Source: Trichoplax adhaerens (lineage: Eukaryota; Animalia; Placozoa). Taken from it: DNA of 64,000 bases. The translations under genes were made by a program, and so were the position numbers. Position 1 is the stretch's first letter. Every line of letters begins with the position of its first letter. Shown here in pieces: positions 1 to 63,629 of this stretch. Below the pieces are notes generated by a model. That model was not told the origin of the DNA and made no database searches. It worked only from the letters and a program-made list of their open reading frames with translations. The stretch spans positions 226,886 to 290,885 of the forward strand of contig NW_002060955.1 of assembly GCF_000150275.1 (NCBI RefSeq), read 5' to 3'.

Positions 1-2
1 GT

Positions 3-1991
3 CTATAATGCCACTTCGGTAGGTATTGAGCTACTTTCATCTTCGATAATAAAGCTTGAATCATCAACTTGACTTAAATCGACACTGTTATTCACACATT
101 CTTCATAGCTAGGAGGTGGTAAAGCCAAATACGCATTTTCTATGTAATGGAATAATTTGAAAAAGTAAATCTTAAAATACTTATTCTTTATAATGGTTAT
201 CACAAGTCGATGTCTGTGCTAAAAGTATACCTGCTTCAGTAATCGTTGATGATGAAGGCTCAGGACACAAATTGGAATCGATTTCTTGAAGGTTTTGAGC
301 ATAACGATCTTGTAGTCTTGCAGAAACTGTACCAATCACGACTGGAAAGGTTACTTGTATATTTTCATCATAAGGAATTACGACTGTTGCCTATCATTAA
401 TGAGATAGCATTGAGAATATATTATATAATCATATCCCGATAGTAATTTACGTGTCTTATCTATCACATCTAGCCCTTTAGAATGATCAGTCCCATAATG
501 AATATTGGACAAGGGAAGTTATACACCGAAAATAGAATTACATCATTATTCTAACCTTTAGTTGATAAGTTACAGATATAAACCGGCAACTCTTAATTGT
601 CGGAGGAAGAGCAGGAAGAGCAGATAATCGATCATTCCATTTATAAGTCTCCTGCGGTCCAATTGATTGATTCGATTGTGTTTCATAACATATAAAACTT
701 CTGTAGCAATGAATACCTATAATATAATTATTCTTGATCAGAGATCGCTCTTCAGTAACAGTATCTAAGGTATGTATTAAAGCAGCCTGAAAGCTATTTC
801 AGTCTCTCAGAACAATTTGAATACACCTTTTGCCTTCCAATGGACGTGACGAATCAGCGTAATTCGGATGCTACTTAATCTTCTAGATGATAAATTTTCA
901 CATTCAGCATCGATGATAATCTTTTCACCGGGGCAATAGCCGCTTCTATCGATACCAGCTCTGAGCTTAATCGGGCCTGACTGGCAACAACAACAGCATA
1001 AAATGGTTTCATTTTCTTTAAGACAAGGTGGTTGCTGTGAAAGAGAAAAACACCTTTTTATCAGCATATGATAGACAACAGTAGATGACGAATTTGGGTA
1101 TCCTGAAGGAGTTATTTTGTATCGTACGTGAAAGGTAATATCTAATAGCAGTATCTTTTATAATTTAACAATCAAGCCGATTATATATTTTAATTTTTAA
1201 AACATTAATCCACTATTATAGAGCATTAATAAAATTTCTGTTCAATCAAATTGCAACGTACAATTAAAGCAGGCCTATCGATACTGATCGATTCTAACAA
1301 GGCTATTGGTCGTTTGATGATTCGAGGGGATTTTCCAGTTCGATCTATGCTAGCTATCACGACATAACGAATACTACATTGACTAAGAAGTGAAAATGAT
1401 GATGGTATCCTAACTTCGGCCGAGAGAGAAAAATTAAATTCAAATTCATGACGACCAGCCGGTAGAAATGCGTCATTGCCATTAGTTTGACCTTCATCTA
1501 AGCCAAAGGAGGTTCGACAATTACAATCAAATTGAACAAAATTTCTATTCCAAAAACTAGATTAAACAGAGTAGCGAAATCTTCCCTATCATAATAATAT
1601 GTATCCTACGGTATCGTAGTTTATTATCTGAATTGTAACGACGTCTATCAAATAAGTAAGAATCGAGTAATTAAGAATATGAAATCAACTTATAAAAATT
1701 ACTGTTGCCCCATAAATTGATGGATCGATCCAAGTAGACTTCTTTTTCATTATAGCAATAGCCGCCACCGGGTTGTATCGCAACAGTACCATTGCCATGA
1801 TTAATGAATGGATTGCCATTTCTCATTCTAATGCATGTATTGGCTTCTCCATAGATTCGAACTCGAATACTACGAATCTCGATATCTTGGCTTACATGAA
1901 CAACCACAATACCATCAACAGATCGACCAGAAAAAAATATCGGTGGTTTTTTAGCAAATAGGATTTCGAAAGCAACAAGCTTCCTCATCAT
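3..1991 (-). CDS. Alpha-arrestin (ARRDC-like) paralogue 1; 6 exons: 1991-1703, 1497-1262, 1034-827, 716-556, 390-231, 139-3; ~396 aa; PPSY tail
   Basis: Manual splicing at GT-AG sites gives an open 1191-nt CDS. Motifs: IFFSGRSVDG, GRHEFEFNF...IPSSF...IRY, LCCCCCQSGPI, DRSGYCPGE, LPPTI, FPVVIGTV and LPPPSYEECV, all typical of Arrestin_N/Arrestin_C alpha-arrestins. Confidence 0.92.
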
Positions 1992-2165
1992 AATCTCGTT
2001 ATTGAATACGCTTAATTTTCTATTTTACAGGCTTTGGCTAATGCTGATAGTGCAAATAGTTCAACAGAGAAATAACTTGGTTATATCCAAACTTCATAAT
2101 ATTCCTTAAACCTTGAAAATACAATCAAAATTTAAATTTATTAAAACTAGATTTAGTTCTGTTTA

Positions 2166-2192
2166 TACGCCAATGTTTACGCCAATGTTTAC
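2166..2192. promoter_or_regulatory. 12-bp tandem duplication containing two CCAAT boxes and two TGTTTAC (forkhead-type) sites, ~180 bp upstream of arrestin 1
   Basis: tacgccaatgtt occurs twice (2166-2177, 2178-2189); TGTTTAC at 2174-2180 and 2186-2192. Function is inferred. Confidence 0.35.
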
Positions 2193-3089
2193 TGATTACA
2201 ATAATTCAGTTGTAAAATACGAGCACACTTATCTAATTTAATTAATCTCTAGATCAGCTCAGCAAGATTTGAGCTTTAAAACTCTTAGAATTCTGTCGTA
2301 TAGTACAATTTTGTATCTATTGATTTGAGAGCTTACTTTCAAATATTTATGTAGCACTGATTTATATTTCAATCGCTTATGCCAAATCTAAAATCAATAT
2401 TGAAGTATATTTCCTACAATATTTCTACTTCTGCTATTAGGAATACTGGAATTAGCCTGTCAACTTGCTATCTCGTAAAGAATTAAAAATGCGAACCTTA
2501 TTTTATTCAGACAGTCTCGACTAGAAAAGACATGGTAGACTAAATAGTCTCATTACACTGAATCCCATTTACATCAAGTACTAAAGATTGTCCTGTGAGA
2601 AACTATCATATTTGCATTAAGATGTGTCTTTGCAGTTTTAAAGCCATGACTTCGCTATTTAGTTTAGCGTGCGTCAACTCTAATAGTTACAGATGCTCAA
2701 TTTTATTCATTAGTTACGATAAAAATCATATATGATCCTTTTTAAATTTTAGCCTGTACTCTTTTTATAGGGTGGAATAATAAAAAACTAGGCCGGAGAC
2801 GAGATTTATTAATTTTATTTCAAGACAAATAGACTAGAAGCCGTGGCTATAGGACGATGCCTAAAACGATATTTCGACAGTTCATCTAGTTTTGGATTCC
2901 GAAAATTGTTCTATTCGTATTTTAATTAATCAGCAAATTCACACATAAATCGTCATTAACTGAGATTCTCAGTAGAGCATTTCTGTGCTTCACTTTATTA
3001 TTTATTATTATAGGCGTCGTTATCCTATAAGCTAGTGCATATATAATATATCATAGCTAATACTGTACTATACAGCAAAATCAATTAAG

Positions 3090-3115
3090 TTTACGTGATG
3101 ACTGTATCACGTAAA
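3090..3115. promoter_or_regulatory. Perfect inverted repeat carrying paired TACGTG/CACGTA (HRE/E-box-like) cores
   Basis: tttacgtgat-gactgt-atcacgtaaa: 10-bp arms and 6-bp spacer, in the divergent intergenic region between arrestins 1 and 2. Confidence 0.35.
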
Positions 3116-7964: not shown

Positions 7965-10833
7965 ATGATAAACAATACGTCAATCAAGCAATTTGAAATT
8001 TCATTGGGTACCAATCCGGCAGTCTATTTTCCTGGTCAAGCAGTTAATGGCAAAGTGATATTAGATTTAGAAAGGCAAATCAATATTGCAAGTATTCAAG
8101 TTCAGTGCTTAGGTTTCAGTAGTTGGAACGTACATCGAAGAACTAGTGCACGACATCATCACTGCGACATCAACTCTAGAAAGGAAACTTTCATCGATGA
8201 TAGCGAAACTTTATGGGAAAATGGTAAGGACTAATAAAGAATAATATGTCTGCTTTTAGGGTTCTGTTAATACCAAGTTTTGATGAAGTTGTTCAATTTC
8301 ATCTCTTAAGTAAACGTTCTGCAGTGTTGCAAATTTTATATCCACGTATACAGCAGCAAGTATAGAACCATAGTCGTACTTGAAATCCATGAACTATTCT
8401 TAACCATTCAAATTTTACCTCGAAGTAATATTTACATTTTATAGGAGTCATTAGTGTTTTTAGAGAAAACTTCGGTCCTTTTATCTAGCTTTTGAGTAAA
8501 ATGAATTGATCTTGTTTAAACTATCGATTAAGCATTTCAACAAACATTTTCTACTTTAAATCTCAAGGTGGCTATCGTATTTGTTAACATTACGATCATA
8601 TACTGTATGTATTCTAGATAGCTATTTTATGCAAGTGGACGACACTAAAAGTGGATATCTAGGATTTTCAACTAGTTTCAATGCTCTACTTGTGCATTAC
8701 GAAAGAATCATAGTATACTGTTATATAAAATAAAGCACTATGAAGTGTAGAATATTCCGTAGTGCTTAATAGTTATTGTAGATTAGGGATTGCAATTTCA
8801 TGCATCACAGTATATTTAATAGGAAGTGACCATGAATAACATTTCCTGTATTTCTGACATACATAACAATGATATACAGCAATCTTATCGACATTGACAG
8901 TCGATATTTGTGGTCTGTAACTAATAGTAATTTTACCCTTCCTGTTTTATATCATAACATACTATTGATCAGTTTCATTAAATGAATGACCGTTCTTATG
9001 GAATCAGTAAAATAGAGTATAGCTATATCTAGCCTATAATAAATTGCTGTATAATATGATTAATCTATCATTGAATTCGTTCTGATCATAATGGGTAATT
9101 TATGATTTCAAAAACTTTAAAAATTACTATTCCATAGAAATACTGACGATCAGATACCATCATACTAATTTTAAAATTAAACTATTCCCTAGGAATTGAT
9201 AAATCATCAGTAATAAGTTATAAATGAAAGCCTAACGTCACTTATATCTATTTTAGTGGAGGGAAATTTGCAAGAAATGCCAGTAGGACAATATGAATTT
9301 AATTTCAACTTTCCACTGCCTATTGATAAAAAATTACCATCATCTGCTGAACTGATGTGGTATGACAGCCGTATTCGCTATTGCATTATTGCAACTCTCA
9401 ATGATAAAAAGAAAAAGCTATATCGAACCGTAAAAGTCTTTACATTTTTAGAAATTATTGATGTAAATCGCCCACAATTTAAGGTAAATATTTAAAACTC
9501 TTAATTCCTAACAGATACAGAGTCTAATTAACCAGTATCAGCCCACAATAGGCCATTACTAAATCCAATTTAATAACTTCGTTTCCTTCATCATGTAAAC
9601 CTGATGAAAATCATCTCTTCCTATTTGAACTATGAAAACTTTTATTACTCTATAATTCCAAGGTTACTAACTGTATGGTATTATAACTGATTCTAATCTT
9701 ATATTAGTAACATGGCAAAAGTGAAATAATGTCTTATCATAATAATAGTTACACAAAGATTTAAATAGAAAAGAAATAATTAGAATCTGAAGATAATATA
9801 CCATAGTAAAAACTAATGCAATAACATTTCACATATAAATCTGCCTTATTGTAGTGGCAAAATTCGTATAAAATCTAATTTATCTTATTCAATGAATCAT
9901 CTTCATAAAATAGGCACCTCCACCGCTAATCGAAGTTGAAAATACTTCATGTTGTTTATGTTATCAATCTCTACCTACACTATTAACGATATCTACTGAT
10001 CGATCTGCATATTGCCCTGGAGAAAGTATCAAATTTGAAGTTGTTTGTGATAACATGACATCCAGTAGAATTAAGTATATAGCAGCTAAACTTGCTCGGA
10101 CAACTGATTTACATGTAGGAGAACGTAAGGCAACTATTTAATTATATAAACTTAAACCTGAATTGAAAATAGAGCAGTGTCAAGAATCGTTTCATAATGA
10201 TCTATGACTGGGTTGCATAATGGCAAATACTTTATTCATAGGTACTTTTCTACACGTTCGACATTATTACAGTGAAGTTCGTTCAACAGAAGAAATAACT
10301 GGAGGTCAATCCTTTACTTGGCATGAAGCATCTATGAAAATACCTTCTTTACCTCCGTCAATTAAATCGAATTTTATCACTGTTTCATATGAATTATTGG
10401 TTAGCAGAAATTTTGCTGAATCTATATTGGAATTAAATTTCTTGGTAGTTTAAATATTCCCATTTTTTTCCGGCTTTTATGATACAGATTATCGCGAAAT
10501 TTGTCCACAGTCCAAATCAATTAGCTTCTGCACCGATCACTATCGGTAGCATTCCGTTAAATTTGCAACCAGATCCAAGCCCTCCGGCATCAGGTAAGTA
10601 TATATTTATTTACTGTATAGAATAGCATCTCTATAACATAACGGTATTCAATTAGCTTAAATACTATCAGATAGATAGACCACATAATATCCGGTTTATT
10701 TCCATTCCTTTTCGTAGACGTAAATAGACTCCAATCTGCAAATGTCGTCTTTGAAGGATGTGTTGATGATTGCGAAAGAAACATTAATTCGAAAAATAAA
10801 TTTAAACCTTTTTATCCAGTCGCTAGAATATGA
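7965..10833 (+). CDS. Alpha-arrestin paralogue 2; exons 7965-8223, 9257-9483, 9914-10124, 10242-10399, 10488-10593, 10718-10833; ~358 aa; no PPxY
   Basis: Spliced 1077-nt open CDS. Motifs: VYFPGQAVNG, GQYEFNFNFPLP...LPSS...IRY, SCCLCYQS, DRSAYCPGE, IPSLPPSI, PITIGSIPL, FKPFYP. Confidence 0.92.
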
Positions 10834-13325: not shown

Positions 13326-16300
13326 ATGGCTAAGAAGATCGTAACAAACTTTGCTATCGACTTTTTAATTCAACCACCTGTTTTCTTTCGAGGCCAACCA
13401 ATTTCTGGGATTATTTCTATTTGTTTAGAAGAACCGATAGAAATCGAATGTCTAAAAGTTCGCATGGTCGGTAAAAGTCGAACTAATCTTGTATTTATGT
13501 CACATAAAAGTAATCCTAAATTTAATCAGGAAATTAAAGATGAAGAAACTTTTGTTGATCAATATCGAATTTTAGTGGGTAAAGGTAAGAGTAATAAGAG
13601 TTTAATACTTGTTATTAATCTACGTGTAGAAATTATTTCCAGTACAATTATTACTCCTTAACGCGTTCTTTGCCCCTACGGTTATTCACCAAACTCTTAA
13701 GATTTATCTCAGACCTTATGACCCATGTAAATTAAGTCCTACTGATTTTAATTGAATCAGATAAGCTAAATTATCTTAAAAACTATCCTATTATATACCT
13801 TAAACGTCCATAAACCAACAAAGAGACAGCATTTAAGTAATTGTGTCCTTAAATGAAATCAAAAATTCTTGGATTCATATTTTATCCAGATAAAATAGTG
13901 TAATATCGTCTTACGAGGATGTTGAAAATAGTTGTAGTAGTTACGGCTATCTCACATCGCCATTCTGATTTGAAAGCACAGGTATAAACTATTTTACTGT
14001 AGGAAAGTTTAATTAATAACAATTTATTCCCTACGGCAGTTAGTAATTCGGCACCCAAAGCTATTTTTGAGTAAAGTGAAAGTCATAGTATCGAAACTTA
14101 GCCATCTAATATTTGTCAAGTATTGCTTACTTGTACAATGTTATTTCATCTTTGGAAGCTCTTCTTTAAAACTTATTAAAATAAACTTTTCCTAAGAGAT
14201 AACGTCAAACTAAGATTCAGCTTCCAATAAACAAGATTGTATTTAAATAATTTTAGAATATACCATGATGGACCGTAAAGACATGCAGTATGATAGTGTC
14301 TACCACATGTAGTCCATAAAAACGCTTAATTCCTTTAAAATGTGAGGATTTCGAAGTCAAAGTTTGGAAAAAGGATCTAGAAAATGTTTGTCTATTAAAA
14401 TTTAAGCTTTCACTAGAAACAAATTTTTCTTTAAGGTGGTGTAAAATCTTACTGTACTATATGATACATCGGCAGGATCGTTTCTTTCTTCATTACAAGA
14501 TCATTCACTGCAACTATGTAAAGATATGTCAGTAATTTGCTCAAAACTAAATAACATTGATTGTTTGGTCCCATCACCCAGTACAGTCTATTTTGGTAGT
14601 CTTACGGGGTAGGTTGTTCAATAGTATAGTCAATTGAGGTATTTGATCAAATAATATAGTAGAATTTGGTTGCAGTAATTAATTAATAACACAGTTGATA
14701 GTAAAATGCTATAAGTTCGCAAACAAGTCATTGAACAGGAATCGCAGAGCGAGGTTCATTGCTTATAAAAATAATTATCGAAATCTGCCCTTTCTCCTAA
14801 ATTTAATACAATTTACATTTTAATTTTTTTGTAACAGAACATGAAGGGCGTCTATTATTACCTGCCGGTAAATCAGAATTCAATTTCAACTTTACGTTGC
14901 CTACAGAAAGTAAATTGCCATCGACATTTGAAAGTAGATCTTCAGAGGGTTATATTCGATATTCAATAGCCGCAGTATTGATGAGACCATGGGATACTGA
15001 CTATATCTCGAAAAGAGCTTTCACAGTCTTGGAAGAAATTGATGTCAATCAGCCAGCATTAAAAGTGAGAATGTTTCATTCAATTACCGTACAGATCTAA
15101 CCGTATAGTCATAAATTATTACTAGCAAAATATTTCTTCAGACTGTATCAAATTTGCAAATAACACTTTATAGTACGAGTAAAATGAGGAGTATTCATTT
15201 TCTGATCGTAATTAGTATCGTAAAATTCTAGTCAGAGTGTGTAACAGATTACTATGCAGCACTAAAACTCTATCAACAGGGTTTTAATTCTTGGTAATTC
15301 TACTATGTAATTGTACACTATACAGGTGCAACCACCAATACTAGAAGGCGAAACATCTGTTTGCTGCCATTGCTGGACTCGTCGATCCCTTAATCTAGCA
15401 ATGACAATCGATCGTAGTGGTTATTGCCCTGGTGAAGCTATTGTATTAAATGTAAGGTGTAAAAATACTTCAAATCGAATATTAAATGGCTTGCAAGTAA
15501 AATTATGTAGACGAACACAGTATTATGCTAAAGGTAAACACTAGTAAACCCATAACTCCAATAATTCAGAATAATCAATAGTATTCCACCATTCTTTTCT
15601 AAGTTTAACTTTACTTTTTATTTAGATCATGATCAAATTACTTATAAAAGCTACTATAGGCTTACCTCAGATAAACAAATTAACGTAGGTGAGACTTTTA
15701 TTTGGTCAAATCAATTAATCAGGATTCCATGTATATCACCAAGTATCAACTCTGCAAAACTGATCAAAGTGAACTACGAACTTCGGGTTAGTGCCTATGT
15801 TATTTGATTATTCTATTTTAAATCACTCTCTGTATTTGTCAAAGGATTTAAATTGTATTTCTTGATAATTAGAATGATTGCACTGCGTATATTCCATCAA
15901 GGCTACTGTTCATTTACTTGCATTGCACTAAGTAAAGTAAGATATAGCGGTACCCTTTGTAAATTGTCGATTTCTCGATATATGATCAGGCCAATTAACT
16001 CTTAGTAGCATTACAGTTAAATTATATCTTGTGAGGTCAATTTTATTAAAATTAATAGATTATGGCTGACAGTTAATCCTTTAAGTAGAGAGCTCAGATC
16101 TATACTTAATTTGGTCTGAATTTTATCCTCACTACGTAAATTTATTAAATTAAAACAATTATTGCAGTAAAAGCCATTCATAGTACAATAGTGGCTTACA
16201 TAAAATATTTAAAAGCTGCGAGGAGTACGAAAAGATTTTGACATTATCATCCTTAGCTTATCTTAAAACATCTAAAGATTTTGCTACTATAAATCTAAAG

Positions 16301-16858
16301 ACAGATATTTATGAAAATGACTTGCATAACACTTCTAGAGCTTAAATAACCTGATTTATCAATATTTATAGCAGATACTATTGACGTTCGAAAACGAAAA
16401 TAAATTGATTTCATTAAATTATTTTCTATTCAAAATTGTTAAGGTTTCTGTTAAAGTTCCGTATGATACAGACTTTAGAGCTGTTATTCCGATAGTTATT
16501 GGCACTATCCCTTTAGAAGTACAAACACAATCAGGAGGACCTATACCTATCCGCGCATTCTATGATGATACATCCAGAGCAGGTCAGAATTTCCGAATTG
16601 AAAGCAACATTAATATTGTATAAAATGCAGCAATCCTTACTCTATTTTCTCACAACATTATTATATATCACGTTGGTATAATTGAATGATTTAATGATGA
16701 ATTCATTTATTGCAGGGGCTTATAGACTAGATACCAATTATTCAAAATGTGTGGATGGAACCGTACCTATCCACAAAGTAAAATCGACTTTCGGTCAGCC
16801 TAATTACATTCCGTATTATCCATTTGTTCGAAATTATCGGCCACCCTTAACTAATTAA
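13326..16858 (+). CDS. Alpha-arrestin paralogue 3; exons 13326-13584, 14838-15064, 15326-15533, 15626-15786, 16444-16582, 16716-16858; ~378 aa; no PPxY
   Basis: Spliced 1137-nt open CDS. Motifs: VFFRGQPISG, LPSTFESRSSEGYIRY, RPWDTD, VCCHCW, DRSGYCPGE, IPIVIGTIPL, YIPYYP. Confidence 0.93.
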
Positions 16859-20723: not shown

Positions 20724-23250
20724 ATGACGGTGTTACAAGCTTTAGACATTGTCTTGTCAGACCAGATGGCAATCTATTTTCCTGGCCAAACCGTCGAAGG
20801 GGTGATCATTGTCCATATTAGCGAAGCGATGAAAATGCGTAGTATCAAAGCATCCATTTTAGGTTACTCGTATACTGCCATTGAAGACCCTGGTGGCCTT
20901 CGCTTGGGTGTTCTATTTACACGAGAAAAAGAAAAGCACTTAGATGAGACCATGGTAGTATGGGGAGATGGTAAGAAACTGTCCATGTCTAACCCTATCG
21001 TTCATTAACAACAATCAATCACACATGTATACTGTACTCATGGAAGTTTTTACAACCGATGGACAATCCATACTTCCATTGAATCTAGTTATCAATGTTA
21101 CCATTACTCGATCATGCCTTGCAAGTGGCTACAATAAGTAGACATACACCGTGCTGGTAAAGTAGTGTAGTACTACAATTGCATACTTTAAATAAATGTC
21201 TGCAATGGGAAGATCATAGTAAGTTAAAATTGAGCAGTCTCGATCAATTAATGCCATATTGTGAACCAGTGAGTTATCTAAACAGCACAGGGAATAATAG
21301 TTCCAGTTAGTACAGCACAGGGAATAATAGTTCCAGTTAGTATAGGTACAAAGAATAAAATTATATATCATACTAATGTAAAAGTCACAAGGCAAAATCA
21401 AAAGAGTGCCACTAAAGTGGATCGCTGTAATATGACCCATGATTTTATTTTATACTGTACCTTTGACTGTATTAGCGAAATTGAAACACTGTTATTATCC
21501 TTTGATTCAATAGCAAATGGGTCAGAAGATGTGCTGGCAGCTGGAAAATATAACTTTAATTTTCAATTTAAGTTACCCAATGATGCCCAATTACCATCGT
21601 CGTTTGAGTACAGAACAAGCCACATTAGATATGAGATCATGGCGACAATTGATAGGCCATGGAAATCGGATCACTTGTCGAAGAGAGCATTTACATTTTT
21701 ACAGATCATTGACGTCAATAAACCTCCTCTCTCGGTAAGTTAATTAATAAGTGATTGCTTTATTAATTAAGCCATTCAATAACTCAACGCCAAATCAGAT
21801 AAAATAAGCGATAGATGTTTGGATAATTTTCCCCCCTTGTATGGTTGAAGTTGTACCTAGTTAAATGAAAATCGTATGTGTTTAAATGGGAGTTGGGCTG
21901 TTTTTTTCGTTCTGAACTTTGACCAATTATTCATATGAACTAACTGGAGTTATACGATACTATACTTTAACATCGAACACCAATGGATATGACGTTGTCT
22001 ATTTTGTCTAATACAGTAGAAGCCTTTAATTGAATTAAAATTGTTTCTTATCCAATTCCGCTTGGTAAAATAACCATCGTAATTCATGATAATAGTAAAG
22101 CATCCATAAAGGTTTATGCAGTTGCTTTTAGTCAATACAATCGACGACCTAAAAGAAGCTGCTACATTTTATACCATAGCAACCACTTCCACCAAAAGAA
22201 GCTGAAACATCCATTTGCTGTCTATGCTGTACTTCTGGTCCGATTACACTTAAAGCAAGCATCGATCGATCTGGTTATTGTCCCGGAGAATCAATTTCTT
22301 TAAAAACAGAATGTATCAACAACACAAACACAGATATGGAAGGTATCCAAGTGCGTCTCTACCGAATCGATTCACGAACTGTTCCAGGTTTATCTTTAAT
22401 AGAATAAATTTCTATTTCAAGTCATGAACAGTAGCCCTAAACCATTTTGTATACATTACTTTAAGTATACAAAGTAATTTATGCAAAAGGGTTCTAGCTT
22501 ATAAACAGTGGTAGTCGCATTATTGTTATGATATGTCTATTTTATTGATTTGCAACGAAGGTCGCACGATAATCCATAACGAAATATACAGCAAGCTTTG
22601 CTCCGATCCGATAAAAGAGCTGCAAAACTTTACTTGGAATCCAGCAATAACAGTACCAGTGGTTGCACCAACCATCAACACCTCCAAATCGATTACAGTT
22701 TCTTATGAATTGCAGGTTTCCAATTATGTCTTAGCTGATCCATTTCATGTTACATAGCAATGAAGAGTATTCGTTTATTTACGGTATGCTTTTTTTCAGG
22801 TATCTCTCACAGTCCTTTCTGGAAACACGTTAGAACTGAAAATTCCCATCACTATTGGAACCATTCCATTGCATGTAGCTGCGCCTAATATCGCAAATCC
22901 ATCACCTGGTCAGTCGCCACCTGATGTTCCTCCATCCTGTAAGTACTGACAATTAGTGTATTCTATTCTTGATCCTAGGTAGATTTCATTCGGTTCAAAT
23001 TTAATACGTGCTTGAATATTTATTTGTAGACGATGCCATTCATGAAGCAGTATCATATGATTATATGGAATGCGTTGATGGTCCGTATGAGTTAAAGGAA
23101 ATTGACAGCCGTGAATATGTAACCTACAAGCTATCATTTGCACCTTTGTATCCTTGCGTTAAAAGTAGTTTACAAGCCAACAACTCTCCTGTTACTAACC
23201 AGCCCACAACAACACATGTAGATGATGTTGCGATCAGTACCAACCAATAG
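20724..23250 (+). CDS. Alpha-arrestin paralogue 4 (most canonical); exons 20724-20970, 21514-21734, 22180-22387, 22561-22715, 22800-22938, 23030-23250; ~396 aa; PPSY split by intron 5
   Basis: Spliced 1191-nt open CDS. Motifs: IYFPGQTVEG, LPSSFE...IRYEIMATIDRPWK, ICCLCCTSGPITL, DRSGYCPGE, IPITIGTIPL, VPPS|Y, FAPLYP. Confidence 0.94.
21283..21342. repeat. 30-bp direct tandem duplication in intron 1 of arrestin 4
   Basis: cagcacagggaataatagttccagttagta at 21283 and 21313. Confidence 0.9.
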
Positions 23251-25968: not shown

Positions 25969-28900
25969 ATGTCCAAAAAATCAAAAACTAAAATTCAGGA
26001 TATTGCCATCGAAATCGACGAAAATCTATCGTATGTTCTATCTGGCCAGTTACTAAAAGGCAAATTGGTTATCAACACTTTGGATCCGTTAACAGAGATT
26101 CAAAAAATCGTTGTCGAAGCTCATGGAGATGGTTATACGATGTTGAGACCTGCAGCCAATGCCGGAGAAGGAAATGTACGACATGGCCAATGGAAGGAAT
26201 ACTTAAAGTGTAGTAGCACCGTGATGAATCAAGGTAGGTTAATTTTAATTGACAAGGTATCTACTCTTACTACGGACTTTTAAGAAGATAATAGTACAAG
26301 TGCCTGCTATGATCATCGACTGTCCATCGTGCATGTACAGTGCAACGGATTTGGAACATTTTTAGACAAGAAGCAACTTATTACTCATCTCCGGGCAGGG
26401 ATTGTTGTTTACATTGACCCAGCTGTTTCAATTTATCGTTTGCGTGTTGATGAATTACATCACTGTAGAGTATTTCATCAACTAAAGACTAGAATTAATA
26501 TCAAACTTACCATGGAATAAAATAAGAAATTATCATTTGGTAATGAATTCCAACATCAAGACTATGATATTATTTCCGCCTTATTCGCATAGAATTGATT
26601 GCCGATTGATTTCGCTCTCGTTCAATAAAAATGACATTTTCATGACCTTAGTTCCAGTTCTTGACAGGATTGGAATACGGTAGATAGATGATGATGCATC
26701 GATAAAGTAGGTAATGATCGATTGACTACCTTCAAGGTGCATCAATTTTCTAGCTAAAACTGCGAAAGACAACGATAGCTACGCTTTCACTTTATACGTA
26801 ATTCAATCCATCATGATGTCTTCCAGCGGCATCGCTAGATGTTAACTTGTACATGTTTAGGAATGGAGAAGCTTTTTCTATTTAGGGAAAGGTTTCAATT
26901 CACCATGATGATTAAATGATGACATAGAAAGCTTTCAATCAGAGTTGAATTTGTTAATTTAAATACTATCCTCACCAAAATGATCCCCAATCAAAGGTAA
27001 TGTCCTGCCAAAGCCCGATTATCGCGGCTCCCGTGCATTTTTTGGACTTCGCAATCAGATCCAAAATGCTGAATTAAGTATTCTCAACGATCTCACTATG
27101 GCACTAGCAAAACTAAGCAATTTCCTTTCGTTTCCAATCAAAATAATAATAATAATAAACCGATAGTAAAGGACTACTGCACAGATTACATGTTGAGTGA
27201 TTATCGGAACATCAACATTCCCATGCTTTACAGAAGAGCCAATTTGAACATTTCAAGGCTGCTTTTAGTATTGCTCAGTTTACGCTCGATATAACGTAAT
27301 TTATGCAGATTGCTCACTTTGAAACTTGAAATTTTAGATTACAGCCAGGTCCAGTGATCCCGCCTGAGTTCTTGCCTAATAGTCCATCGGTAAAGGAAAG
27401 GTTTACTCCCTCTGTACATTAATGATTCCAATCGGATGATGAAAAGCAATGAATACTTCAAATCTAATTGATATCAATCACGCTAATAGTCAGATTAATC
27501 TCTACCGTGATCCAATACAGAAACGCTTATTTGTTGGCCATCGTCAAATTTTCAGATTAGAATTATCGCCAAAATATTAACTATGGTAAAATACATGTTG
27601 AATTGAACAGAAAGGGAATTTGACTAGTTCTAGAATAATAGCTCAGATCAGATACTTTATAAATCAAGACCAATTAAAGGCCAATAATCCCCATCAACCT
27701 GCACCGAGCCACACCATATAGGGCAATACTGTAATTAGGCAAAAACAGGATAGCGATACAGAAAATCCATCAAAATGTGAGTAGTAATTGAGCGCTAAGC
27801 AGTCGAAGAAAACTGTAGCGAACATTATTAGATTCGATGCCAACGTATTAAATGCTCTTCCTATTAACTAATTAACGTTAACATAGATCAAAATATCCTT
27901 ATAAATGTTTATGATATATGACGTTGAAGAAGGCGAAATATCTCAATAGTCTTTTTTCTCGCAGTAGATGAAAGCGAAACATTAACTTTGGATTCCGGTC
28001 GACATGAACTCCCCTTCAACTTTGTCTTGCCGTACTATCTCCCATCCTCATTTAACACAAGCAATAAAAACCACAACTATATTCGTTATTGGATTAAAGG
28101 AACTGTTTTCTTTACCAAAGACCGATCGGCAACTATTTATAAATCGTTCAAAGTCAGAGAAAAGGTCGCTTTAGGTACCTTGCAGATGAAGGTAGGTCTA
28201 GTAATAATAGGCTTAATTATAATTAATTAATAGCCGTTTAGGAATGAGCGCTTATTATATCCCCTGAAGTAATGATAAAATTGAATTACCCATCTTATGC
28301 CAATGGCTATTGCTGTCCATCTTTTCTAGAATGAGCTAAAATCTACTTCAACTGACAATGAATTAGTCGATCATAAAGTAAAGCAGTTAGTACTCAAGAT
28401 ATAGGATATAATATTAGCTCAATGTGCCATAAAATGCTATTCCCCCAGCTTTAAACACCAATAGAATCTAAAAACGCGTATCTTTGTTTCAGCTCCAATT
28501 AATTATTATCACCAATGCGTAATAATTAGGACTGATTATCGCCTGACCTTTTCCATCTTATTAACAGCAGTAACTAACTTAAGATTTAGAACATCGAAGT
28601 AAAACTTTCCGTTAAATTCAATTTATCCCTTGATCAAAGCTTCCAACTTACATTGACTGTAAGCGATGTTATGCTGAAGCAATTTTCGTAGACGGTGACC
28701 CAGTGTTGCACATTAGTCCCTCAAGAGAGACCAAGTTAATACTTTTATATTAAACATGATACCCGTCTATTTTATGTGGCTTTAGGAAGAACCGAGATCC
28801 ATTGATTTAACGCAAACATTATGCTGCAATATATTAAGGCCTGGAAGCGTCCATTTGACCTTTGTAACCGATCGAAAGGCTTACTGCACTGGACATTCGA

Positions 28901-36200: not shown

Positions 36201-37597
36201 TCTGATTATTTCAGTATGAAGTACAATATCTTATTGCTGTCATTAAAATCAATCATAGAGTACAGCAGCCAGCTCCTATGATAAACTAATCCATTTTTGT
36301 TACAATTTACTGTCTCCATGATTTTGATACCGAAAATACTTGTTAGTGAAACATGAAGGTATCTATTTCTCTATTTCTATAAAATTTTATTCTACTACAA
36401 ACTCTGGCTTCTGATATTTTCGATATGAAGTACAATATCTTATTGCTGTCTTTAAAATCAATTATTAAAGTATGGTAGCCAGTTACTATCACAAGCTAAT
36501 CAATTTATATTACAATATACTGTCTTAACAACTTTGGTTTCGAACCTATCGGTTGGTAAAATATTAGAATGTCTATTTCTATAACTCTTTATTCTACAGC
36601 AAACTCTGGCTGCTAATATTTTCTATGTGAAGTACGGTATCTTATTTTACTCACTTAAATTAATCCTAGAGTGCGGTAGCCAGCAACTATCATAAATCAA
36701 TCAATTTTTATTGCAATTTGCCATCTCTATAACTTTAATATCGAACATACTCGTATCTGTTAATAAAACATTGAGCTGTCAATTTCTATGACGATTTATT
36801 GTAAATTAAACTATATAACATTGAAAATCTTATGAGCGATTTTTCTTTCAAGACAATTAAGCTATTTTATAAGAAATAATACTTATACGAAACTAACGCA
36901 ACTTTATGTTTGTGATAAAGTATCTTTAAAACATTAAAAGAGGTAGTACTTCGCGTAAGACTTCATTTTATTTCATAAATTTGGCTCTGCCAACAAAATT
37001 CATAACTATCCATTTCCAGTCTAAAACTGTCCATTTTATTGCAACTAAATCTACTATTCACATATAGTATAGAGAGTACTTTTTACCTCTAACTCAAATT
37101 CTAACTTCTTGTTCAATTTATAAGCCATTATAGTAGATAGTACAAAGATATTATATTGATATGCATGATTTTTCTAGAACAGATTTTTTTTCTTGTTCAT
37201 ACATGAGCAGTTTAAATTAAAATGAACTAGATTCAATCCCATATGCTACCTTTTTAGGCTCTTACACAAATGGCCGTAATGCAAAACAGCATTTTTCATT
37301 GCTTTCTATCGTCTAGCATCAGTAAGGCTGTAAATTATTCTTACCTCCGCCGTAAATAGCATTGGTGCGATCGCAAAAAGTCAGAAACTCATAACAGTCG
37401 TTCACTTCACGTTCGATAACCGATCGATTCTTCGATTTTGTATGAGTATAAGCACAACCAAATAAGCGAATTTTAATAAATTTTAATTTAATTGCTTCAC
37501 GAAATTCAATTAACACTTGACCATGAATAGAATCTCCGGGATTATAGATCAATTTATTTTGATCCAATATGATTTGAAATAATATCAGTTTTCTCAT
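33266..37597 (-). CDS. Alpha-arrestin paralogue 6; exons 37597-37345, 35954-35725, 35571-35364, 34268-34111, 33773-33515, 33423-33266; ~421 aa; Ser-rich tail with PPSY
   Basis: Spliced 1266-nt open CDS. Motifs: IYNPGDSIHG, GAHKFGFQFQLP..LPSSF...YIRY, NRYGYCPGD, IPNLSPTI, MPVVIGT, LPPSYDTCV. The exon 6 acceptor (aaag|cc) is the least certain boundary. Confidence 0.9.
36195..36795. repeat. Diverged tandem repeat, ~3 copies of a ~202-209 bp unit, in intron 1 of arrestin 6
   Basis: Anchor tgaagtacRRtatcttatt at 36217, 36426 and 36628; tagccag and aaactctggc also recur. Confidence 0.85.
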
Positions 37598-54720: not shown

Positions 54721-54894
54721 ATGGTTAAAGCTTTGACTTTGAAAGTTCAATTTTACGATAACCGCGATATTTATTATCCCGGGCAAATTTTAGCCGGTTA
54801 TCTCGATACTGATATCAGAAGAGATGTCCAAATCAATTATATTTCAGTTCGGTTATTAGGCCAGGCTAATAGCTCACCGCCAATGGGAATGGTA

Positions 54895-54925
<31 letters not shown>

Positions 54926-57900
54926 GCGACAGAGATGATTATCAACGACGTACAAGCACGGTTAAATTGGATGAAAATCAATATCAAGCGTCCATCATCG
55001 ATCGAATAATTGTGCCTTGGGGTAAAGGTAAGAGAAGTTTATCATTCTTGCAGGATTGACCTTGATGAATACTATCATCAATTGAGGCTCAAATTCAATG
55101 TAACAGAATACTCTCCTTTCAAGCATTTAAGAAATTAAAATTTCTTTCTTCCAATTTGATTATGGTTGATTTTGATCCTAACAAATTGCTACTAATGCTA
55201 AAAGTAGCATCGATCAATTTTATCCGTTTCCTCTAAAAAGACAGGAAAATTAAATAGCCTTTACAATAAATCCTAAATCTACCCATTACTCTCTCTCTCT
55301 CTCTCTTCCTCCCTCCATCATGATAGGAATTAACAAAGATCAATTTCATATTTATGATTAGTATTGTACCTATTTAGGTGATATTCCCATGTTACTGCCC
55401 ATTTTACACCTAGAACTCGTAGGCGTTTACTAGTAATAATAATTTTATTAATTATTATTTCGTACTTTGGCTATTTTTTGCCATTTTTGAAATACTATCG
55501 ACTTAGTACGCATTACAGCAACCAATTAATACTTATTCTCATATTAGAGTCTAGACATTTCCAACGATGACTATCCATTTTTGAAGCCACCTTTGCACGA
55601 ATAGTTTGCATGAGGAGTGCTCTTGTATTGCCGTTGGAGCAGTTATTATATCATCCAAATTGAATTGTCCATTCATTTTCAAGCCTTTATAAATATTCTT
55701 ACACCATTCTACCGATATTCTACAGACAAGTTAAACAGGAACTTTATGGCTTGATGAATTGCAATTGTTGCAAATTGACTAATATAATTTGTAACATTCA
55801 AATGTGCCTTCGTACATTTCAACTGAAACTACAGTCAATATTGCACGTGATAGAAGGGATTTGATTAACTTTATTGCCGGAAAATATATTCATCATTTGA
55901 ATAAAATCTGTTCCGATTTTTTCTGATCTGCTTATATTGCCATCTTCATTCTGTAACTCTATTAAAATTGGTTTGGTGGTTGGTAATCATAATATTTGAT
56001 CTTTAAATACCAAAATCGGCTCGTCATCATTGCATGCAGATACAATAAACATTCTTCGAGTTAACTTACATCCAATACAGCTACTCTTACCTAATGTGTC
56101 AAAGGTATTTAACATCTTTATTTCTTACCTATACTATCAGTATATTCAATTAGTATACATTTCTCTCCACATGATCAGAGCATTCTATTCAAGATTGTGA
56201 ATACTTACTTTTATTACGGAATAATTGACTAGTGGCATGCTAGACTAGATTATGCTCTTCAATCAGAGCATGATATTCAAGATTGCAAGTTCTTTTCCAA
56301 AGCAATATATGGATAATACTGTCCTTGTTTAGTCATCTAGCTTATTTATTTAAAACCTCTATTAACATATTATAAAGTAAGATGCTTCACAGCATTCAAA
56401 ATCTTCCAATTCTAAACAAATGGAGCTAAATTCTAGCTCTAGTTTATGTTATCATTAATTTTAGGATGCTATATCTCTAACCTTGCAGTGATGTGTCATG
56501 GTTTTTCATTCTGCAAACTACTTTTTATGATGACAATTAACTTTACTTTTTATCACAAAAATTTCTACCATATTTTCAATTTCTACTATTGCTTTAACTA
56601 ATAATGGCGGAATATTCTACACCAATCCATTCTAACCTCTATTATCATAATTTAAGATCATAATACATTTATTCCCTGATTATTGTGGCATGATTTTTAA
56701 TATTGTATATGCATGTTAAGATTGCATGACAATTAAACTTTATTCTCTTACCCAGTAAATTTGACTTCTTCATTTTAAATCTCTACTACTGTATTAAAAG
56801 GCCATCAAAGATGTTAGGTATTCTAACATCTTCTAGACGTAGCCTTTCCTATCCTAATGTAAAAAGCTATATCTGTATTAATTATTACAGCAGAAATTTC
56901 CAAGATTGCAAATCCTTCCTAATTATACCATTACTTTCCTCCCATTTCTTAGAACTCTATCCCTATTTTGAACCTCCATTGTAGGACTAAAGGAGGTAGA
57001 ATAATCAATATTCTGATTTTCTATCTCAGTCTTCATAAAGTCAGGCTGTGAAGCCTCTGGCATTTTATTATCATGCTTCAACTTTTGCAATATACGAGCA
57101 TGTATGTAGCCATTACAAAAGCCCATTTTTCCTTTTTCTCCAAGACTGATCTTATGATTTTGAATCTCTTTTCTCAATCCTTTGCATGTGTATGCATATT
57201 TCAAATCCGTCTCTACTCTTTTAAGGCTCAAAATGGCAAAGTTTATTCGTTACTGTCAAGACTGCAGTCCTTGTATCGCTGACTATATTCGTAATTCATT
57301 TTTTCGAACTAGCTCTTCAAAGACCAAAAATGGCAAAGTACATTTATTACTTTTAGGACTGCGATACTTGTATCGCTGACTATATTCTACATAGTTCATT
57401 TTTTACTTTGAATTTCCTGCCTCAGTATTTTGCATCTTTACTTCGAATAGCTTTACTAATATAAGGCTAAAGATCGTGGGCTATTTAAAATTTTTAGTTA
57501 TCAAGTCTACAAAGCTTGTACTTGAATATGAAAACATTTGGCCATTTTTAGGACTTTATATTCTACTTTATACGACAATCGGTTTTAAATTTACAATCCT
57601 TTTTTTCATTTTAATTTTGGGACTTCATTACCGTTATCTATAATAATGATTCGAAAGGTCGAGGAGTTGTTCTCAATTAATTGTCTAGGCTTTGATTAGA
57701 GGTCAAAATAACATGCATATATTATTAATCTGCAACCTTTCAGTTCCTTTCCAAGTTTCATACCTTTGTTTTAAATTCTAACCTTAATTTGTGATACAGT
57801 TGAAGGCTAAAATTAAAAAATAGAATCTCATTCTCTCATTTCACATATTCATCCATTCTAATGAAAAAGGAAATGTCTTGCTATATCAATCTACATCTGC

Positions 57901-60900
57901 TATTCTCTTTTCATCTCGATATTTATATCTTCATTCCTCATCTTTCACTATATCCTCTTCCTAATTGCCGCATCTTTGTTCTACATATTGAGTATTATCT
58001 TCTTTTTCAACGTGTCACTAAAATGGAAAAATCTAACTTTATTTTCATCATTCTTTGTTTTCTATAGTTATAAGATGATATATTTGTCTCTATTCATTTG
58101 CACGTAGCTATTCTTAAATATTTCTGATACTTCTATCTTTATTTCAATGGCTTACTATTAGTTTCGAGGAACAAAAATAGACTAAAACTGAACATATCAG
58201 CTCAATTTCATTATTTTATGCTTTTATCACATACCAATAAGTAACATCCGCCATGTTAGTCTACACCAGCTGTTCTATAATATCCCGTTATTCGAAAGTC
58301 TACAGTTAGAGGATAAGGTTAGGGTTCGTATTTTAAATCTTTTTTCATTTCTTCTTTATAAACCTAAATATTAAGGATATAATATTCACTGATTGTCTTA
58401 TTCTTTTGTGATTCAACTAGTTAGATCAAGTTACTTTTGTAAACCTTTCTCTATATTTATCATCTACCTATTTTATGCTATTACAAGTACTGTTTATGTT
58501 GGTAGCGGTAACTAACATAACCATCTCCTCAATTATTTTTTCCTTCACCATTCAATCTCATGCTATCGAATTGATAACCATAAAATGTCTATCCATATCA
58601 TAGACATTTTAACATGACAATTACAAATAGATAGATAATAACTTTTCAATCCAAGATCAGCAATATCGTCCGAGTATCAGTTGTAAATGAATTTTAACTT
58701 GAAGATATTGATTAAAGTTGATGATATTTATATTTTAGCATTGATGAAAATAATACTTGGTATTTTAAAATATGTCATAACTTTCACTGAAATCAAATTC
58801 TAATCTGTATCATATAGTGAAATCGGAAATATCCTACCCGAAACTGCTAAAGTTTTTGAATAAAAACCACATGTCCTACTCAAATCATGCCACTCTATCT
58901 AGTAAAATTCATTAAATAATTAATTTCCGAATGTACAGTAAGGGACAACAACATTATTTCCATACCCACTATCAGAAATAATGATTTAATAGCTTTTTAA
59001 AACGATATGAATGATTAAAAGGCTTACATTGCGGTCTAATAATATGCTATTCCACAGTATTGCATTAAATCGATTTCCGCAATATATCAAAATTCTTTAT
59101 CTTAAGATGTATTTAATATAAATTAACTCTATAATACTACCTTTCTACTAGGATAAATTACAGCATTTTCTCCCATACTCTACATTATTAGTAACTATTT
59201 TAATTTTCTACATCTAAATTTTTGTTGAAATGAACTACTTACTAATGCAACTTACGATGATTAAATTATTACTGAGCTACTGACAGCTTCAGACTATTTT
59301 CCAAAATTTCAAACATCTATTCTATGCAAATCTGCTTTACTAATAAGTTTGGCACATTTCTGAAACTCTTTAATTTTTAAATGTAACTCACAATGACTTT
59401 ACATTATTAATATTTCTTATTATAATTTAACATACCTAATTTGCGCTGAATTAAACTGCTTACGGTGTAGCCGGCGATGACGAAGTTATTACTGCACTAC
59501 TGACAAGACAGGTGTTTAACTATTCCTGAACATCTTAAAATATTAAATATAACTTATAATGACTCTACATTTGTTATAAAGCAGCTTTTCAACAAGATCA
59601 CGTAATGTACGATCAATAAGTCAATTCCTTGAACCACGTATCAAGGAACGATATCTGCAACTATCAGCAGCACTTTTGCTTTACTTACAGACTGCACAAA
59701 GGCTTAGACGCCTCGTATTTTACGTTAAACACTAAGTTTAAGAATTAACTATATTATACGATATACTACATTTATATACTCTTCCTCAATAGTTCATGAG
59801 TCATAGTTAGTACGATTACTTTTGGAATCATTCACTGAGTATTTACGAACATAGACATCTGATGACTAATACAGAATAGTCAGATTACGATATGTCCTAT
59901 CACGGAACATTTCCACAATAATTTGCAATCTACCATAAGTAAGTTACAATCACAACGATTCGAACTGTAAGTAGATAATTCGCATTCCCTAATATATAGC
60001 TAATAATTTGAAAATATGTATATGTGCCACTGTCATAAAAAGGCAGTGCTATATTAAAACACAGCATAACCAAATTAGAAGTTAACTGTATAAGGATAGG
60101 CTGACAAAATTATCCTAAGATTGATTTTTCTACTCTAATAGAGTATATAACACTGTCACAACATTATTAATATTTTTAGAACTTTTCATATCCAATTTAT
60201 AGTAAATTAATTACGTACAGTGTAGCTTGTGACGATAAAAATTATTACTGGACTACTTACAAGACAAGTTTTAAATTATTTCTGGCCTTCCCAAAACTTC
60301 AAATACCTATCCTAAATTATTCAGCTCTGCTAACATCATAATATTCAATATACTGACTAAACCATTTACAGTTTAAGATGATAAAACTATCACAGTTTTG
60401 CTTAATCATCAGATGAACTAAAAAGTATTGCAAATATGGATCATAAATTACTTTATCTTGCTAGCATGTGCAAACTGCTTTAGGATGAAATATTTATAAC
60501 TCAAGAAGGTGAAATTACTTTTAGTTTTCTACTCTCGACATAAATTGTATACTCTTATCTGACCTATGCTATATTATACTGTTCCACTAATACACTTTAC
60601 AACTTCGATATCGAAAGATTGCCAACTAAACCACTTAAGCCACTATTTTCCGAATCACAGATGAAGTTCGATTATTTTAGGCAGTCCTATGGTTGCAAAT
60701 AATGATTATAGACTATTCAGTCTAGTTATTATTTTAAAAATCAAGCTTATTACATTCAAGTACATCCTAAGATTATGCGACGATTGCTTTGCTTAATTAG
60801 GACATAAATTTAGGGATAGCTACAGGGCTTGCTAATTTAAATAGCTATCATAAATAATTTATTTTCTTTTACTTATATTTTCTGGTAAGCTTTAAATTTA

Positions 60901-63629
60901 AAAGCCTGGTTATATGTACTAAACTACTTAGAGCCTGAAATGGAGCCAGCAACATTGTTTACAAAATGGAGGCTTAAATCTGAGTTATTTCAAACAGTCA
61001 CAGCAACAAGAATAGATTTAGAAAAAACAATGATTTCCCAACACCTTTAGCCTTGGCTAAATTCTAATTATTTAAATTTTATTTGATTTAAATTGATTAT
61101 TGCTATCTGTTCTTCCCAAATCAATCATAATGATGTTTAACGTAGTTGTGGTCTTCCATCTAGTATAAATCTAGTATAAATAAAACATCGATATCCTCAA
61201 AGGCAATAAAATTCCGACTAAAATCTTAAAGACCGACTGCGATCTTGCATCAATTTCTGGCGAAATATTCTAAAATGAGTTTTAAATGACAATTTCTATT
61301 TATGCTATCCAATGCCATTTAAATTAGCCACCTATGACTCATATTCAATAAATAATTTTTCTTTCCGCTTCTCAATAACGGAAAATAACCTTGAATTTGT
61401 TAACCATTTTATTATTGAACTACACCTATAATTATAATTAAAAGTAAGATCGCCATTTTTGCCAAAGATTCAATATATTATCAATATAGAAGAGAAATGG
61501 AAATGAATTCGAGATTAATGTTTTCCAAACACTGTTATTCCAGTACAATTAAAACGGAGCTAGTAGAAAGCATATCAAACGTTGGGAAATGTTGAGTAAT
61601 AATAAGTTTATTATATCATGTCCTATTTATTTTCATTTACGGCTAAAGTTGCTCATTCCTCATCATTTTAAGGCATTAAAAATGTCGAACCAAAGCATTT
61701 CTACTCATTTTTATGCTATACGATTATGATTTAGGGTCTTTTAGAATGAATGCAGTAACAGCTTTCGTATCCCATCTAATTCTTTAGCCCTTTTTTGGTC
61801 TTAAAGCTGCACTAAAATGAAAATTTTAATACCTATAGGTAACTTTGCAGACGATCAAAAGCCAATTCGACACGACATTTTAACTGCTGGACACCATAGA
61901 TTTCCTTTTGCATTTGTCTTACCCGAAGAAGGTTTACCATCCTCAGTCAAGGCTGGCTCCACATTTACCATCAATTATCAAATTTCAGCTACGATTGTTT
62001 TTCCTCATCGCCCTTCTTATACTGTGCATCAATCTTTTTTCATCTTTGAAGTAGTTGATGTTAATTTGCCACGTTATGTTGTAAGTCCTAATTTCATCCT
62101 GTTGTTGATTCTTATATCATTAAATATACTAACATTGATTGCTTGATACAATATAGAAATCATCTAAAACCGATACGAAAGAGATTAAAATATCCAAATT
62201 ATGCTGCCTGCATGGATCCATTCGAATAACGGCCTCAACAAATCATGTAGGATTTCGTCCAGGAGAACCAGTTTGCATGAATGTTAGAGTCCAAAATAAC
62301 AGCCACAAAATCATTCGTTATTTACGTGCTAAATTAATTCAAATCGTGGAAATTAAAGGTAGGTTAGAAAGGCAATAGTTTAATCTAATCAAATTACTTT
62401 AATTACAACTTAAAGAGAGCCGAAAAATAGGATAATGCTATTAATCCGAATTCATTCTATATCTGTCACTACATTTACTACCGTAATTTAATATGGTACA
62501 TCCGACGGTTAGCGAAATTAAAGCAATTTAACCGCACTATCGAGCATATTTGCTCGGAAAAACATTCTATCAAATCAATCGTTCAAGATGAAGAACTTAT
62601 ATGGGAAAAGGAACCTTTACAAATACCTTCAGTGCCTCCAACGGTGAATTCATGTCCTGCAATTAGCATTAATTACGCTGTTGAAGTAAGTAGCACAAAT
62701 AGGATATACTATTTACCGTAATTTCATTAGAATCACGCCTTTTTTCTCGCCTTTTTTCTCGACACTGTCTTCTATTCCATGTTAATAACTAGCATATTAG
62801 CTATCGCTGATTTTACATTTACTTGTAAATAATTTTTGGCTCAAGCCGGAAGCTAGCATACGGTAGTAGCGTAGTTGATGATGATCCAAAATGGCCAAAG
62901 TAGATCATTCGTTCAGAATAATTTCTAAATACTACCTTATAGCTATACTGTCCTTTCAAAATGCGCCAAGAGTATCCAAGATTAATCGTAATCGCTATTA
63001 GTCGAATTGTTTGCTAATAAAGCAATTATATGATAACTAGTGTATAATTAAACAGATTATAACACCCATTTACTACACTTAAGTATAAATTTTATTCTAG
63101 CTCAAAACTATAATGCATCGTTTTTTTTCAAATAGAAGCTATATTTAAAATCATAATAGAGGCAAAGTATATCATTCTCTCGGGAATAAATTATAAGGGA
63201 TATCGATTAAAGGAATGAATTTTGTGCCTTTTATTGTAGATACAGGCAGTCTTGCCACGTAAATATCATCTAGTCGTTCGAATTCCGATCACTATTGGCA
63301 CAGTTCGGTTATTTATAAATACTTCTGCATCGGTTACTGCCTATCGCTCCGGAGTAGACACAAATTGTCGTCTAGGTAAGTTATAAACTAAACCAGATTC
63401 ATTTTTATTAGCAGGAGTTATAAACAGATCAAATTAATATGCCAAATTACTTACTCAATATATTATGTAAAGTACTATCAATCATTAAATAACTGCTATT
63501 GCTCTTCTTAAACACTTGATAGATGGTTCTGAATCCGTTAAACAACAACTTAAGGGTACTATTAGTGATGCCGTTGCATTTAAAGACGTTGAGCTCGATT
63601 TTAATGAACGTCGTCAAGCTTCTCTTTAA
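54721..63629 (+). CDS. Alpha-arrestin paralogue 7; exons 54721-55027, 61839-62080, 62157-62358, 62513-62685, 63240-63375, 63523-63629; ~388 aa; poly-Asp loop, tail RRQASL
   Basis: Spliced 1167-nt open CDS. Motifs: IYYPGQILAG, GHHRFPFAFVLPEEGLPSS, LCCLHG, GFRPGE, IPSVPPT, IPITIGTV. Joining across the 6.8-kb intron 1 is supported by the conserved phase-1 WGK|G junction and the absence of another exon 2. Confidence 0.88.
54895..54924 (+). repeat. (GAT)10 coding microsatellite encoding poly-Asp
   Basis: Ten consecutive GAT codons in exon 1 of arrestin 7. Confidence 0.95.
55289..55306. repeat. (CT)n microsatellite in intron 1 of arrestin 7
   Basis: Run of ctctctct... Confidence 0.85.
57228..57390. 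repeat. ~97-bp imperfect tandem duplication in intron 1 of arrestin 7
   Basis: aaatggcaaagt at 57231 and 57328; tgtatcgctgactatattc at 57272 and 57369. Confidence 0.85.

Follow-up and report, generated by a model that had tools for sequence, protein, structure and literature searches.

The 64,000-nucleotide stretch of Trichoplax adhaerens DNA analysed here (the window, C1402:226886-290885, contig NW_002060955.1) contains seven genes for alpha-arrestins, and it raises the question of how such a set of related genes came to lie together, how old it is, and whether and for what it is kept. The answer that we consider very probable is that the cluster to which these genes belong is a placozoan expansion made by local duplication, in which the copies have diverged widely and are nevertheless constrained, and in which three of the window genes, G1, G4 and G6, are plausible ubiquitin-ligase adaptors. 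The window is the right-hand end of a T. adhaerens alpha-arrestin cluster of about 24 genes on the 1.92-Mb scaffold C1402. The expansion as such is known: a lineage-specific expansion of ARDC proteins in T. adhaerens was reported by de Mendoza et al. 2014 (PMC3971589), and Kamm et al. 2019 (PMC6321704) counted 23 ARRDC2-4-related alpha-arrestins in Trichoplax sp. H2, of which 17 are tightly clustered on scaffold 76, and described that cluster as an expansion unique to Placozoa.

The window genes and the cluster they belong to

The whole genome (105.6 Mb, 1414 contigs) was scanned in six frames with the Pfam profiles Arrestin_N and Arrestin_C. Seven groups of matching exons are found in the window, in the orientation -,+,+,+,+,-,+. 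Spliced models G1-G7 were built from open frames and GT..AG sites with frame continuity. Pfam, PDB and representative-protein searches were run per exon, while the joined models were used for local alignment, local BLAST, trees and pN/pS, the ratio of non-synonymous to synonymous divergence. The G+C content of the window is 28-36%, it contains zero N, and no part of it resembles human, viral or toxin sequence. The genes are as follows.

3..1991, - strand: G1 (TRIADDRAFT_59959), alpha-arrestin, 396 aa, 6 exons, PPPSY tail; exons 1991-1703, 1497-1262, 1034-827, 716-556, 390-231, 139-3 (289/236/208/161/160/137 nt)
7965..10833, + strand: G2, alpha-arrestin, 358 aa, 6 exons, Pfam matches, canonical PPxY absent; exons 7965-8223, 9257-9483, 9914-10124, 10242-10399, 10488-10593, 10718-10833 (259/227/211/158/106/116 nt)
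13326..16858, + strand: G3, alpha-arrestin, 378 aa, 6 exons, Pfam matches, canonical PPxY absent; exons 13326-13584, 14838-15064, 15326-15533, 15626-15786, 16444-16582, 16716-16858 (259/227/208/161/139/143 nt)
20724..23250, + strand: G4 (TRIADDRAFT_59962), alpha-arrestin, 396 aa here, 6 exons, Pfam matches, PPSY split by intron 5; exons 20724-20970, 21514-21734, 22180-22387, 22561-22715, 22800-22938, 23030-23250 (247/221/208/155/139/221 nt)
25969..30489, + strand: G5, the most divergent copy, 348 aa, 5 exons in this model, without PPxY; exons 25969-26233, 27968-28191, 28786-28993, 29096-29256, 30301-30489 (265/224/208/161/189 nt)
33266..37597, - strand: G6 (TRIADDRAFT_59964), alpha-arrestin, 421 aa, 6 exons, LPPSY tail; exons 37597-37345, 35954-35725, 35571-35364, 34268-34111, 33773-33515, 33423-33266 (253/230/208/158/259/158 nt)
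54721..63629, + strand: G7, divergent alpha-arrestin, 384 aa (388 aa with the alternative exon 2 acceptor), 6 exons, without a PPxY tail; exons 54721-55027, 61851 (or 61839)-62080, 62157-62358, 62513-62685, 63240-63375, 63523-63629 (307/230/202/173/136/107 nt)

The open reading frames (ORFs) of all seven genes are intact. Public annotation of the window genes (TRIADDRAFT_59959-59964) dates from 2008, and the models of G1 and G6 show 100% identity over their full length to TRIADDRAFT_59959 and TRIADDRAFT_59964, respectively. Since these two models reproduce the public proteins residue for residue, the way in which the models were built is validated. For G1 exon 4, an acceptor at 764 (209 nt) was rejected, because the acceptor at 716 gives the RefSeq protein exactly. 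The public model of G4 has 318 aa against 396 aa here, and one exon has probably been missed in it. The H2 orthologue of G5 is annotated with 365 aa over the same span as G5.

The first exons of G5 and G7 are to be noted. Exons 2-4 match Pfam in both genes, clearly so in G5, and exon 1 taken alone matches Arrestin_N weakly, short of the threshold (positions 2-60, E = 0.09, in G5; positions 2-46, E = 0.07, in G7). These profile positions complement the exon 2 matches at 85-148. Exon 1 of G7 (54721-55027) was missed by both the Pfam genome scan and the initial ORF listing, and was recovered only by a hidden Markov model (HMM) built on exon 1 of the six other genes (E = 1e-7). Its donor site, ..WGK followed by GTAAG, is in phase 1 as in other family members, and the intron that follows is 6.8 kb long. 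A run of ten aspartates followed by GDRDD (54880-54940) lies in an Arrestin_N loop of this exon and is absent in the other six genes.

The family assignment is drawn from the domain order and from comparison with solved structures. The N domain of A10, a gene of the cluster to the left of the window, matches only a Caenorhabditis elegans ARRD protein, ARRDC3 and TXNIP among solved structures. The C domain encoded by G4 exon 3 is ambiguous when taken alone, as ARRD comes first, followed by beta-arrestin-1 (E about 1e-3) and, more weakly, TXNIP. Searched against 1.84 billion cluster representatives, the A10 N domain finds 439 proteins at E <= 1e-3, and the named matches are "arrestin domain-containing protein 3/4/17-like" from sponge, coral, amphioxus, insects, molluscs, a nemertean and a tunicate. 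G1-G7 are alpha-arrestins, with Arrestin_N followed by Arrestin_C, closer to ARRDC/TXNIP than to visual/beta-arrestins or Vps26. Mammalian ARRDC2/3/4 and TXNIP have the same order of domains, and G1, G4 and G6 have their PPSY tail; unlike them, four of the seven window genes are without PPxY, and the Trichoplax copies form a placozoan clade of their own. The mammalian alpha-arrestin genes are dispersed, and they are few (six in number, PMC6321704).

A preliminary description of the window had proposed seven intact spliced ORFs of alpha-arrestins in this mixed orientation between positions 3 and 63629. The Pfam matches, which stand in the right order in all seven genes, the GT..AG models and the solved relatives ARRD, ARRDC3 and TXNIP bear this out, and so do the limits: the G1 stop codon starts at base 3, and the G7 stop codon ends at base 63629. 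The description had also treated the seven genes as a unit, and this view had to be given up as an artefact of the window. The scaffold to the left (C1402:1-226885), the right flank and the dispersed loci were searched with exon HMMs, and the hits were grouped into genes. Twenty-four alpha-arrestin genes lie in C1402:17,029-289,564, and seven further copies are dispersed, four of them in two tandem pairs and three singly. The cluster is divided by a 79.6-kb run of N (C1402:85240-164885), which is a gap in the scaffold or else withheld sequence, into 8 genes on the left and 16 on the right, the last of which are the seven in the window. No further alpha-arrestin copy is found in the next 30 kb of the right flank. 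A tree in which the seven window genes are forced together is rejected by the approximately unbiased (AU) test (p = 8e-5).

Three places elsewhere in the cluster show particular structures. Directly after the N run lies A09, a partial gene of exons 5-6 only. A10 (C1402:168526-169032) has lost intron 1, so that exons 1 and 2 form a single stop-free frame spanning Arrestin_N. A13 (+) and A14 (-), at C1402:196855-203828, lie tail to tail with 74% core identity; no other recent duplicates occur in the family.

Tail motifs and possible cargo

Two PPxY motifs are typical of mammalian alpha-arrestins. In the window, the canonical motif is present in three of the seven genes, as PPPSY in G1, PPSY in G4 and LPPSY in G6, each followed by (E/D)-x-C-V, and these tails align with LPSYAECV of a coral protein and PPSYDECM of an amphioxus protein. 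In G3, the tyrosine of the motif is kept and the prolines are gone; G2 has neither, and G5 and G7 have no such tail. Family-wide, a canonical PPxY downstream of exon 4 is found in about 10 of 30 genes (nine credible cases within an exon, and the intron-split motif of G4), and this count is a lower bound because intron-split motifs are missed. WW domains lie 1-2 kb from a HECT domain on the same strand at C1411:5.476-5.479 Mb, C1412:3.178-3.182 Mb and C1413:5.706-5.709 Mb. The adjoining of WW and HECT at at least three loci of the genome indicates that the class of partner ligase exists.

Known alpha-arrestins bind the cytosolic tails of membrane cargo through the two-lobed arrestin fold, which each of the seven proteins keeps. 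Because G1, G4 and G6 keep PPSY-(E/D)-x-CV, they could plausibly recruit a WW-HECT (Nedd4-type) ligase, upon which the cargo would be ubiquitinated and endocytosed. The loss of the motif prolines in G2 and G3 and the lack of the motif in G5 and G7 suggest that these four proteins probably act without direct WW binding. The ligase-adaptor mechanism therefore cannot be general, and the earlier proposal of Nedd4-family adaptors is plausible for the three PPxY-bearing genes but does not extend to the other four. By analogy with characterized members of the family, cargo binding, ligase recruitment and a sorting repertoire are plausible roles.

The kind of cargo has been addressed by Kamm et al. 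2019 (PMC6321704), who hypothesized that the repertoire serves the traffic of G-protein-coupled receptors (GPCRs), specifically the endocytosis of the C-type-lectin adhesion GPCRs, which are expanded in placozoans and used in defence and in managing symbionts. According to the literature cited there, alpha-arrestins act on GPCRs together with beta-arrestin. A repertoire for GPCRs and not for transporters seems to us doubtful, though conceivable, since the sequence is silent as to what kind of cargo is handled, and among the genes noticed in the window there is none for a GPCR. Besides the arrestins, a single gene was noticed there (39686-43672, - strand, between G6 and G7); it has several exons and hydrophobic tetraspan-like segments (frames 43448-43723 and 40345-40581); a gene call of 213 aa is present at the matching place in H2.

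That the copies lacking PPxY (G2, G3, G5, G7, and about two-thirds of the family) make up a new functional class independent of Nedd4 is a further idea, which we judge improbable. If it were true, such proteins might be competitive shields of cargo or partners that pair with the PPxY-bearing copies, and sorting in placozoans would follow a combinatorial code that matches their enlarged set of receptors.

Phylogeny and the age of the exon scaffold

The core identity among G1-G7 is 23-38% over 283 conserved core columns. With all ORFs open, this agrees with the preliminary view of highly diverged proteins, none of them pseudogenised. A tree was calculated for the exon 1-4 cores of 30 usable Trichoplax genes and 37 ARRDCs of other phyla. 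Under LG+C20+F+G4 with posterior mean site frequencies (PMSF) in IQ-TREE, all 30 Trichoplax copies fall in one clade, with a support of 93 in the Shimodaira-Hasegawa-like approximate likelihood ratio test (SH-aLRT). The free LG+G4 tree has one outsider within this clade, the long-branch sequence P0098, which is a 1.3-kb intronless Logan transcript contig from run SRR15421486 whose origin could not be established. The AU comparisons used -fast LG+G4 searches. A tree that unites the clustered genes to the exclusion of the dispersed copies is rejected (AU p = 0.0017), which shows that the dispersed copies branch from within the clustered set. G1-G4, A12-A17 and two dispersed genes make up a subclade of 12 genes (SH-aLRT 95), and G5, G6 and G7 are deep, long branches.

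These results bear on whether each window gene is instead the orthologue of a different pan-metazoan ARRDC clade, in which case the array would be a conserved ancestral cluster. Pair by pair, the window genes are no more similar to one another than to ARRDCs from other phyla, and the depth of the G5, G6 and G7 branches and a borderline result for a constrained search for Trichoplax monophyly under LG+G4 (AU p = 0.044) point in the same direction. However, in none of the trees does a Trichoplax copy group with a named ARRDC of a sponge, coral, amphioxus, insect or mollusc, the monophyly topology taken from the site-heterogeneous LG+C20 tree is not rejected under LG+G4 (AU p = 0.18), and the expansion is termed lineage-specific in both PMC6321704 and PMC3971589. 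We regard separate ancient orthology as very unlikely. The phylogeny, which places the copies in one Trichoplax clade and not in separate ancient groups, supports their reading as a placozoan-specific expansion of what appear to be old paralogues.

The exon scaffold is older than this expansion seems to be. In all window genes, the intron phases are 1,0,1,0,1, the G5 model having only four introns. In the protein alignment, introns 1, 2 and 4 occupy identical columns in all seven genes, whereas intron 3 occupies the same column in five and is off by 1-2 columns in G2 and G7. For exon 3, five of the seven genes (G1, G3, G4, G5 and G6) have 208 nt, exactly as given in the preliminary description; G2 has 211 nt and G7 has 202 nt. 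The statement in that description that the intron positions and phases are the same holds for the phases and for introns 1, 2 and 4, and to within 1-2 columns for intron 3.

Three outgroup proteins, from the coral Orbicella, amphioxus and the sponge Corticium, were mapped to their genomic loci. The Orbicella faveolata ARRDC4-like gene (XP_020612616.1) consists of six exons of 238/233/205/161/172/182 nt with phases 1,0,1,0,1. Its introns 1 and 4 lie in the columns of the window genes, introns 2 and 3 lie within one column of them, and its tail motif, LPSY-A-E-CV, resembles the PPSY tails of the window. The coral gene differs in being a single gene over 12.9 kb, with no adjacent copies in the stretch fetched, and it lies outside the Trichoplax clade. 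The amphioxus ARRDC gene has introns 1 and 2 in common with the window genes and additional introns besides. The ARRDC3-like gene of Corticium candelabrum (OY729831.1), which is among the sequences nearest the Trichoplax clade, is intronless (1170 nt). Comparison with the coral thus indicates that the six-exon scaffold is inherited from a cnidarian-placozoan ancestor and is not specific to the array. The shared exon architecture, which had been presented as a property of the array, is found in the coral gene with the same five introns, and it shows only that a gene with this ancestral structure was duplicated at the DNA level.

The very probable course of events is that one ancestral six-exon ARRDC gene was repeatedly duplicated locally, with occasional dispersal, within the placozoan lineage, and that the copies then diverged to their present identities while staying open and under purifying selection.

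Constraint and significance

The H2 cluster on scaffold 76 is the same locus as the window. It corresponds to contig NOWV01000076.1, on which the orthologues are named "Arrestin domain-containing protein 3". Two stretches of this contig, reached via the orthologues RDD41395.1 and RDD41415.1, were compared with the window. The identity is 99.4% to window positions 1-5456 and 99.0% to 23271-47594 (29.8 kb in all). RDD41395.1, which bears the above name, is the orthologue of G6. The ORFs of G1, G5 and G6 are open in H2, and these three genes together show 8 synonymous and 4 non-synonymous differences between T. adhaerens (H1) and H2. The pooled pN/pS is 0.14 (pN 0.0015, pS 0.0104), and the non-coding divergence is 0.0096. 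Under neutrality about 78% of the differences are expected to be non-synonymous, and four or fewer of 12 has a binomial p of 0.0012. Purifying selection on G1, G5 and G6 is supported by this comparison, with a ratio not near 1. Together with the single Trichoplax clade, it upholds the earlier claim of an old local expansion retained by selection. That the array is instead mostly neutral debris of duplication, open-looking but functionless, is hardly credible: the genes are known from DNA alone, four lack PPxY and G5 and G7 are very divergent, but none of the seven ORFs is broken even though divergence is saturating, the introns have kept their positions and phases, pN is far below a pS that equals the non-coding rate, and the three genes compared are open in H2 too.

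Several points weigh against the reading of a constrained placozoan expansion with partial adaptor function. The selection estimate comes from 12 substitutions, spread over three genes out of seven. The models of G2, G3, G5 and G7 are predictions, the 6.8-kb first intron of G7 is unusual, and transcription and splice junctions of the window genes are deduced from the genomic sequence. Transcript contigs encoding G1 or G6 exactly were searched for, and only the genome scaffold carries these sequences; the RefSeq label "expressed hypothetical protein" is borne only by the neighbouring gene A15. HMMs made from the window genes were used to cut the Trichoplax rows of the alignment, and the top matches to one query, the A10 N domain, served as outgroups; both could favour the grouping of the Trichoplax copies, for which the fast constrained search was borderline. 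The absence of PPxY from four of the seven genes belongs here as well.

Some features of the surrounding DNA were also observed. G7 intron 1 contains, at 59569-60165, a repeat some 600 bp long that is dispersed over many scaffolds. Of 640 first-look candidates, at least 40 were scored as copies, with 79-90% identity, and the repeat looks like a non-autonomous mobile element. Intergenic tandem repeats are found at 19615-20188 (151-bp unit x 3.8, 93% match) and 24119-24494 (125-bp unit x 3.0, 85% match), and G4 intron 1 contains a perfect 30-bp x 2 duplication (21282-21342). The protein cluster of G6 at 90% identity includes short fragments from Global Ocean Sampling and from ENA metagenomes, which suggests that placozoan DNA occurs in ocean metagenomes.

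The published count for H2 (23 alpha-arrestins, 17 of them clustered) differs from that for H1 here (24 clustered genes and seven dispersed loci), and this gap may be due in part to H2 gene models (567 and 790 aa) in which genes are fused. PMC6321704 and PMC3971589 give counts; gene structures, PPxY content and selection are not reported there. As the expansion and the cluster are already known, the additions made here are details: the size of the H1 array, the exon scaffold recognized as ancestral through the coral gene, the presence of PPxY in a minority of copies, and a first small measure of purifying selection. Placozoans have the largest alpha-arrestin repertoire reported for an animal despite having few cell types, a point already in print, and this combination makes the cluster a reasonable place to study how the sorting of membrane proteins diversifies.

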